Positions 7,263-7,469 of a stretch of DNA of 64,000 nt are shown piece by piece; within the stretch, counting starts at the first letter, position 1, and the number at the start of each line of letters is the position of its first letter. The position numbers were made by a program, and so were the translations under genes. Source of the stretch: Pavona decussata (Eukaryota); NCBI GenBank assembly GCA_977016875.1, contig CDRNST010000085.1, positions 620,001 to 684,000 of the forward strand, in the 5' to 3' direction. Below the pieces are notes generated by a model that worked only from the letters and a program-made list of their open reading frames with translations, was not told the DNA's origin and did no database searches.

Positions 7263-7469
7263 ATGAAATCGTCACTACTATTTCTTGCAGCGCTAGGTGT
7301 ATTTATTTTGTTACATACGTTACACCAAGGCCAAGCGTCAGAGCTGTCGGAACTGCTGGAAAAAGAAATCGCCGAAGTGAAAGATGAGATTGACAAGCGA
7401 AGCGGAAAGCGTCCTCCCTGTGGCTTCACGTGGAGGTGTAGGAGAAGGCGCCGAGGATCGGGGAAAAGG
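7263..7469 (+). CDS. Exon 1 of a small secreted prepropeptide (neuropeptide/antimicrobial/toxin-like precursor)
   Basis: MKSSLLFLAALGVFILLHTLHQGQA (signal peptide) - SELSELLEKEIAEVKDEID (acidic pro-region) - KR - SG - KR - PPCGFTWRC - RRRRR - GSGKR, followed directly by a phase-0 donor AGG|GTGAGA at 7470. The downstream exon or exons are uncertain. Confidence 0.8.

Follow-up and report, generated by a model that had tools for sequence, protein, structure and literature searches.

The window, by which we mean the whole stretch of 64,000 nucleotides that was analyzed, has a G+C content of 37.7% and contains no runs of N. Translation of positions 7263 to 7469 on the forward strand gave an open frame of 69 residues with no stop, which matched letter for letter the peptide reported in an earlier sequence-only reading of this DNA. 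The sequence GTGAGA follows the exon immediately on its 3' side, from position 7470. The interpretation of this segment as a prepropeptide exon was borne out. The leader from M1 to A25 (MKSSLLFLAALGVFILLHTLHQGQA; 7263 to 7337) is hydrophobic, with a core spanning residues 4-17 and a Kyte-Doolittle maximum of 2.9 over residues 8-17. When judged heuristically by hydropathy, conserved residues and the small -3/-1 rule, this leader is a predicted signal peptide such as a convertase-processed prepropeptide would carry at its N-terminus, with cleavage probably occurring after A25. M1, L6 and A25 were invariant in the alignments and S26 was kept in at least 90% of relatives; the conservation of A25 and S26 fits the -3/-1 rule for signal cleavage.

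The leader is followed by an acidic stretch, S26-D44 (SELSELLEKEIAEVKDEID), which with a net charge of -6 constitutes an amphipathic pro-region closing in the pair K45-R46 (7338 to 7400), a pair found to be invariant when 18 full-length relatives were aligned. A short linker, S47-G48, and a second basic site, K49-R50, occupy positions 7401 to 7412, with R50 nearly invariant in alignments A2 and A3. The core, P51-P52-C53-G-F-T-W-R-C59 (7413 to 7439), combines an X-Pro N-terminus with a C-x5-C ring presumably closed by a disulfide, and is the most conserved segment of the precursor. On translation it is followed by a tract of five arginines, R60-R64 (7440 to 7454), and by G65-S66-G67 and K68-R69 (7455 to 7469), a possible amidation signal and last cleavage site with which the exon ends. 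All of these features lie on the forward strand, as do those of the remainder of the gene.

Four RNA or metatranscriptome runs were compared with positions 6300 to 12299 of the window. Contigs in runs X1 and X3 joined 7468/9 to 8849/50, skipping 1380 nt with GT..AG ends. These two runs were derived from the same organism and sample, carry the label 'RNA?' under two study records, and are not independent. The presence of a spliced junction in their contigs indicates that the material is cDNA, that the predicted donor is in use and that the gene is transcribed. The splice donor proposed at 7469/7470 is therefore real, and contigs of both runs use it to connect exon 1 to position 8850. The intron (7470 to 8849) is in phase 0 and has the ends GTGAGA...ACAG; contig coverage within it was near zero besides repeat fragments. 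Runs X8 and X10, both metatranscriptomes, gave coverage on repeats only and were uninformative for the gene.

The second coding exon (8850 to 8936), read in phase 0, encodes NGISHHAASFFGDDDFDDELDKDKIYEK followed by a TGA stop. From its translation, charge and alignment these 28 residues form an acidic C-terminal pro-region with a net charge of -6. The gene thus has two coding exons, is expressed, and encodes a prepropeptide of 69 + 28 = 97 residues. Contig starts in X1 and X3 place a 5' UTR portion of the first coding exon at 7244 to 7262 as a minimum extent. A pattern scan identified a TATA-like element at 7203 to 7209, approximately 35-40 nt upstream of the first RNA-covered base (7244), which may act as such. 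Alternatively, the pyrimidine-rich TTTACAG at 7210-7216 could be the acceptor for an unseen 5' exon, a reading based on the orthologue from Stylophora, which has an upstream 5' exon; none was seen for the window in the RNA contigs. In Stylophora pistillata (L006 7396-7700, L007 1-304) this exon is non-coding, measures approximately 300 nt, lies 2.3 kb upstream and is spliced about 20 nt before the ATG.

The 3' UTR extends at least from 8937 to 9577, as determined from an overlapping contig chain and a pattern scan which placed AATAAA/ATTAAA signals at 8991-9038. The chain reaches a (TAA)n repeat and includes one unbridged 43-nt allelic replacement at 9313-9355. At this position the X1 and X3 contigs carry the seven letters TGAGATA instead of the 43 nt of the assembly; the replacement is probably an indel allele and not a splice, because its ends are AC..TC. 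The 3' UTRs of orthologue transcripts L010 and L011 likewise measured about 1.0-1.2 kb. The (TAA)n microsatellite, of approximately 50 nt at 9588-9640, interrupts the transcript contigs, and contigs of lower depth continue onward to about 10160; these may represent a longer 3' UTR or a second transcript. Coral metatranscriptome runs covered two further stretches, 11109-11263 and 7516-7559, at very high depth (up to approximately 540) and with a large variety of flanks, a pattern suggestive of pieces of a dispersed repeat that is expressed. An Rfam scan of 6000-12500, including these high-depth stretches, gave nothing real.

Searches of the whole 602-Mb genome with the single sequence and with a profile found the gene in single copy, and tblastn of the exon against the window returned the self match with no paralogue. 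A second genomic profile match, L008, was rejected as a chance match (E 2.3, motif absent). In other data sets, exon 1 was used as query, exon 2 (28 aa) was scanned against Pfam only, and full-length comparisons were made with natural orthologue proteins. A word search identified two near-identical proteins, encoded on genomic contigs from close relatives at approximately 90% nucleotide identity, which carry PPCGFTWRCRRRRRGWGKR and RPCGFTWSCRRRRRGRGKR. When exon 1 was compared by phmmer with 1.84 billion representatives, 17 clusters were obtained with E values from 6e-23 to 6e-8 and identities of 52-71%. Two profile word searches produced more members, all from stony corals, and added no weak or distant relatives, with no match at E values from 1e-17 to 10. 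The exhaustive search and the two profile searches together gave about 35 distinct relatives.

Every member with a species name was from a stony coral and was annotated as uncharacterized or hypothetical. These species were Desmophyllum pertusum (two genes), Oculina patagonica, Stylophora pistillata, Pocillopora damicornis, P. meandrina, P. verrucosa, Acropora palmata, A. cervicornis, Montipora foliosa and M. capricornis. The genera span both major stony-coral lineages, complex and robust, and the occurrence of members in both indicates that the family predates that split. One or two genes were present per genome where this was checked, and independent spliced transcripts were found for orthologues L007, L010 and L011. 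In these searches members turned up across the stony corals, and none of the non-coral proteins covered belonged to the family. With respect to synteny, the regions within 10 kb on either side of the family genes in Desmophyllum and Stylophora were compared with the window by tblastx, and the gene itself was the sole match. A simple motif scan did not recover the second exon of P0010 (L009), the relative that diverges most.

A common layout was evident among the relatives: signal, acidic pro-helix, KR, linker, X-Pro ring, basic tract, variable end, basic pair, phase-0 intron and acidic tail. In the 18 full-length relatives the acidic pro-region has 19 residues, and L32, I36 and L39, which fall on one helix face, are invariant. 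Residues A25, K45, R46, C53 and W57 were invariant in alignments A2 and A3, and P52 was invariant in A2 and present in at least 90% of A3. At the exon end, K68 was invariant in A2 and R69 was kept in at least 90%, the KR pair was invariant in the full-length alignment A3, and P0010 has KK. The candidate peptide is thus bounded by conserved basic pairs, which are predicted to be cleavage sites. The linker after the first KR measures 2-5 residues and closes in R or K. The ring follows the consensus X-Pro-Cys-[GA]-[FLN]-[TS]-Trp-x-Cys, with an X-Pro N-terminus in 33 of the 35 relatives.

Conservation of the Cys pair among orthologues, on which the ringed peptide of the sequence-only reading depended, was complete, as both Cys and the Trp were kept in all 35 distinct processed regions. 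The spacing was C-x5-C in 30 of these and C-x8-C in the other 5, all pocilloporid, which carry a three-residue insertion. The residue after Trp may be R, F, K, S, T, N or H, and a whole group of relatives has CGFTWFC. Downstream of the signal peptide, the window sequence and every full-length relative examined have exactly two Cys. Between the ring and the exon-end basic pair every one of the 35 relatives has 4-8 Arg or Lys, followed by a variable end of 0-8 residues. Gly stands ahead of the exon-end pair in the window (G67-K68-R69) and in 19 of 35 relatives, and is absent in 16, among them those from Acropora, Montipora and Pocillopora. A phase-0 intron at the exon-end basic pair was found in four genes (window, both Desmophyllum genes and Stylophora), with GTGAGA/ACAG ends and lengths of 1.1-1.5 kb. 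Full-length relatives also have in common the C-tail motif F..(S)FGSDD[FM]DD.LND. In Acropora palmata, isoform X2 of LOC141885165 (P0033) stops one residue past the exon-end KR and has no acidic tail, and isoform X1 (P0062) has a tail of 29 residues; alternative splicing may thus make the C-terminal pro-piece optional.

Segment conservation was expressed as mean pairwise identity over 11 lineages. The X-Pro and ring segment gave the highest value of all segments (0.69), in agreement with the earlier expectation that the ring might be the most conserved part, and was followed by the pro-helix (0.62), signal peptide (0.56), linker (0.55), C-tail (0.38) and the basic tract with the variable end (0.36). 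Values of dN/dS against near relatives were 0.25-0.42, and comparison of the window with L002 gave zero non-synonymous changes in the X-Pro and ring segment. The recovery of 17 clusters, the retention of the Cys pair and Trp in 35 distinct regions and these dN/dS values are together more than would be expected by chance. One close relative (L004 754-1008, approximately 90% nucleotide identity) differed from its sister L002 by four non-synonymous and no synonymous changes: L8F, P51R, R58S and W66R. Three of these are in the mature region and two (P51R and R58S) in the core, a pattern that could reflect relaxed or diversifying selection or a variant allele. AlphaFold2 modelling on the family alignment produced generic helices only and no confident fold (pLDDT 58.8).

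The sequence-only reading did not recognize the peptide as a member of a named family, and we likewise found none in Pfam, the PDB or the literature searched. Both window exons and ten full-length relatives, searched against Pfam at E values up to 10, gave only chance-level matches below cut-offs. A sequence profile search of the PDB returned nothing meaningful, and no mention of the ring strings, accession numbers or locus tags was found in the literature searched. Urotensin II and somatostatin have an aromatic-Trp-basic core, to which the ring had been likened. This analogy did not hold, as Thr separates Phe and Trp in the coral ring, the residue after Trp can be R, F, K, S, T, N or H, the ring is not at the precursor C-terminus but is followed by the basic tract and the 28-residue tail, and there was no Pfam match. 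CCAP, PFCNAFTGC-amide, consists of two residues starting with Pro and then C-x5-C. The P-x-C-x5-C spacing alone agrees between CCAP (PF11105) and the coral family, which gave no Pfam match to it. In the coral family the second Cys is not amidated and is followed by Arg, Lys, Gln, Asn or Val, or by Gly and Arg-Arg, and not by a cleavage pair. In calcitonin a C-x5-C ring stands at the N-terminus and the C-terminus is amidated, and no match was obtained from the coral family to the calcitonin-type models in Pfam. As the family was not found outside stony corals, common descent with bilaterian ring peptides is unlikely.

Among cnidarian peptides, the closest precedent is provided by the cyclic FRamides of Cubozoa and Scyphozoa, CXGQMCWFRamide and CXSPMCWFRXamide, which are encoded in multi-copy precursors (Koch and Grimmelikhuijzen 2019, PMC6909153). 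We found no other described candidate neuropeptides with a Cys ring in cnidarians, and the cyclic FRamides are reported absent from Octocorallia (PMC6909153). A survey of Hexacorallia neuropeptides (PMC7523074) made no mention of a cyclic or cysteine peptide, and no similar peptide was mentioned in a Fimbriaphyllia tissue paper or a Nematostella deorphanization paper. As with the cyclic FRamides, the coral peptide would open with a short cystine ring followed by an aromatic or basic C-terminal part and a GKR-type site. In contrast to their C-x4-C ring, that of the coral family is C-x5-C (30/35) or C-x8-C (5/35), there is no WFR-amide, the peptide is present in one copy per precursor, and no sequence similarity was detectable.

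In the damicornin precursor a signal and an anionic pro-region precede the mature peptide, which is cationic, amidated at its C-terminus and released at a dibasic site. Damicornin, AmAMP1 and digitiferin have ShK-type folds with 6-10 Cys and 40-81 residues (PMC12496222). The predicted coral product would resemble them in being a small secreted coral peptide, but would differ from them in being 16-24 residues long with one putative disulfide and a polyarginine tract, and its precursor has a second acidic pro-piece at the C-terminus. Neither a ShK Pfam match nor a sequence match to the coral AMPs was obtained, and a family with two Cys falls short of the six that define the ShK type. Digitiferin was checked as a possible relative and found to be unrelated. 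In sea-anemone toxins, a polar, negative propart of 9-17 residues always ends in Lys-Arg, and signal and propart are conserved (PMC3447340, citing Anderluh et al. 2000). The coral precursor agrees with this anthozoan layout in having a signal and then an acidic polar propart with an invariant KR upstream of the putative bioactive part. It differs in the length of its propart (19+2 residues, net -6, versus 9-17), in its second basic site, linker and C-terminal pro-piece, and in that the mature core is the slowest-evolving part and not the fastest.

The processing that we propose is deduced, at every step, from sequence features and family conservation. The signal peptide would be removed after Ala-25, and a disulfide between Cys-53 and Cys-59 would close a seven-residue ring in the secretory pathway. 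Subtilisin-like proprotein convertases would then cleave at K45-R46, at K49-R50 and at the exon-end K68-R69, releasing an acidic pro-piece from each end of the precursor together with a short cationic peptide that starts with X-Pro-Cys-Gly-Phe-Thr-Trp-x-Cys. The amphipathic acidic pro-helix would probably serve in granule sorting and/or charge masking. The Arg/Lys tract could have either of two fates: it may be retained as a cationic tail, here giving PPCGFTWRCRRRRRGS-amide, or cuts by furin or PC within the tract and trimming by carboxypeptidase may reduce the product to PPCGFTWRC. In eight relatives the basic pair is followed by xx[FI]W-G and KR (KK in P0010), and a second short FW-amide product is possible in several lineages; the corresponding end in the window has shrunk to G-S. 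Retention of 4-8 basic residues in every lineage while the sequence drifts suggests that the tract has a role of its own, more than that of a cleavage site. The presence of Gly in only 19 of 35 relatives and the variability of the end suggest that the C-terminus is not the key determinant. Based on this evidence from tract and end, we take the ring as the functional core, which would recognize a specific partner.

With respect to function, we give an about even chance to the interpretation that the gene encodes a convertase-processed, disulfide-ringed bioactive peptide restricted to Scleractinia, most likely acting in intercellular signalling as a neuropeptide or hormone-like molecule. Signalling is favored by a specific, slowly evolving motif, an invariant Trp, a near-invariant Pro and a low copy number; the presence of only 1-2 genes per genome, unlike the expanded families of toxins or AMPs, would count towards it. 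An X-Pro N-terminus is a usual N-terminal protection of cnidarian neuropeptides, and its presence in 33 of 35 relatives is, by analogy, a weaker lead. Language-model (ESM-atlas) neighbours, all below 0.9, were mostly neuropeptide-precursor clusters (PDH, DH31, NPS, NPF, PrRP, CCAP and GnRH), and may be taken as a lead only towards neuropeptide precursors. The Stylophora protein PFX32841.1 was absent from three supplementary files of the Stylophora cell atlas. Several observations count against signalling. A polybasic tract of 4-8 residues is unusual for neuropeptides and typical of cationic defense peptides, the post-Trp position and the whole C-terminal end are variable with the amidation Gly missing in 16 of 35, and the core is altered in L004 (P51R, R58S) and by the three-residue ring insertion of pocilloporids. 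In addition, the pro-helix is conserved almost as well as the ring, as in toxin and AMP precursors, and KR before Pro, the junction found here, is a poor convertase site in vertebrate systems.

The main rival to signalling is a host-defense (antimicrobial) peptide, which we consider unlikely. The product would then be the whole cationic ring with its Arg/Lys tail, 16-24 residues and often amidated, which the two anionic pro-pieces would keep neutralized in storage until its release into mucus or onto microbes. The distribution of charge in the family is in keeping with this, as the mature region carries +5 to +10 between an N-terminal pro-piece of -1 to -7 and a C-tail of -4 to -8, and other cnidarian AMP precursors likewise have an anionic pro-region. 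The content of Trp, Phe and Arg, the taxon restriction of the gene, a polybasic tract which is kept in 35/35 as its sequence drifts, and a tail which evolves faster than signal and pro-region are also consistent with defense. Known coral AMPs are also small, secreted and unrecognized by homology (PMC12496222), yet damicornin, AmAMP1 and digitiferin are of the Cys-rich ShK type and unrelated. A specific ring with an invariant Trp and near-invariant Pro across the deepest stony-coral split would be unusual for membrane-active AMPs, the window peptide is strongly hydrophilic and has no more than two aromatic residues, each genome checked has just 1-2 copies, and furin-type enzymes in the secretory pathway would be likely to cut the multi-Arg tract on which the defense product would rely. 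It is improbable that the gene encodes a venom or nematocyst/gland-cell peptide, in which the ring and arginines would act on ion channels or membranes of prey or predators. A signal peptide and a polar acidic propart with Lys-Arg at its end form the standard precursor layout of anthozoan toxins, and the acidic propart here, of 19 residues, closes in an invariant KR, but such a propart is also found in toxins that are not nematocyst-targeted, so the layout is non-diagnostic (PMC3447340). Furthermore, the mature part is the fastest in toxin genes while the ring is the slowest part here, gene-family expansion is lacking, and the second, C-terminal acidic pro-piece is foreign to the toxin layout. 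Slightly less probable again in our estimation is an unprocessed small secreted protein, or one in which the acidic pieces (pro-helix or DDFDD tail) are functional and the basic ring serves as partner or spacer. The invariant hydrophobic face of the pro-helix (L32, I36, L39), the conserved C-tail motif F..SFGSDD.DD.LND and the nearly balanced overall charge of the precursor are in line with such a protein. Against it, each piece is bordered exactly by invariant basic pairs, conservation of the ring exceeds that of both acidic pieces, the C-tail is missing entirely from Acropora isoform X2, and the AlphaFold model shows no confident fold. Two other candidates were set aside: a symbiosis-control peptide was discarded since azooxanthellate Desmophyllum has two copies, and a skeletal acidic protein was rejected as no evidence supported it.

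Judged against the databases and literature searched, the kind of precursor, a convertase-type prepropeptide, is known, and the family with its ring-plus-polyarginine design is new and undescribed. Systematic anthozoan neuropeptide surveys consulted for comparison reported no cysteine-ring peptide. We tentatively suggest, as a possibility that we regard as somewhat doubtful, that the family provides the ligands of a peptide signalling system which arose in, and is confined to, stony corals. The ring would activate a dedicated orphan coral receptor, and the Arg tract would act as a multi-site convertase switch, with release of a further short peptide, xxFW-amide, in several lineages. If this were true, the peptide would be the first neuropeptide or hormone with a cystine ring from Anthozoa, and surveys for repeated amidated motifs would have missed the family because its precursors are single-copy. 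Neuropeptide mining based on motif repeats misses peptides which are single-copy, non-amidated or ringed. Few peptide signals or defense peptides are known from corals: GLWamide, RFamide and a handful more, plus three ShK-type AMPs. The present family is expressed, is conserved in the two major lineages of stony corals, an azooxanthellate deep-sea species among them, and has predicted products short enough to synthesize. Such candidates can be tested directly as ligands of orphan coral GPCRs, with control of settlement, contraction, spawning or calcification as roles in view, or as antimicrobials versus coral pathogens. In Desmophyllum pertusum (MU825396.1; L005 10001-11788 and 17848-19270) two tandem paralogues lie 6 kb apart on the same strand, one with a CAFSWKC ring and the end ...GHHFWG-KR and the other with a CGFTWRC ring and the end ...RGRK-KR, and these provide a natural pair for testing which parts of the peptide matter.
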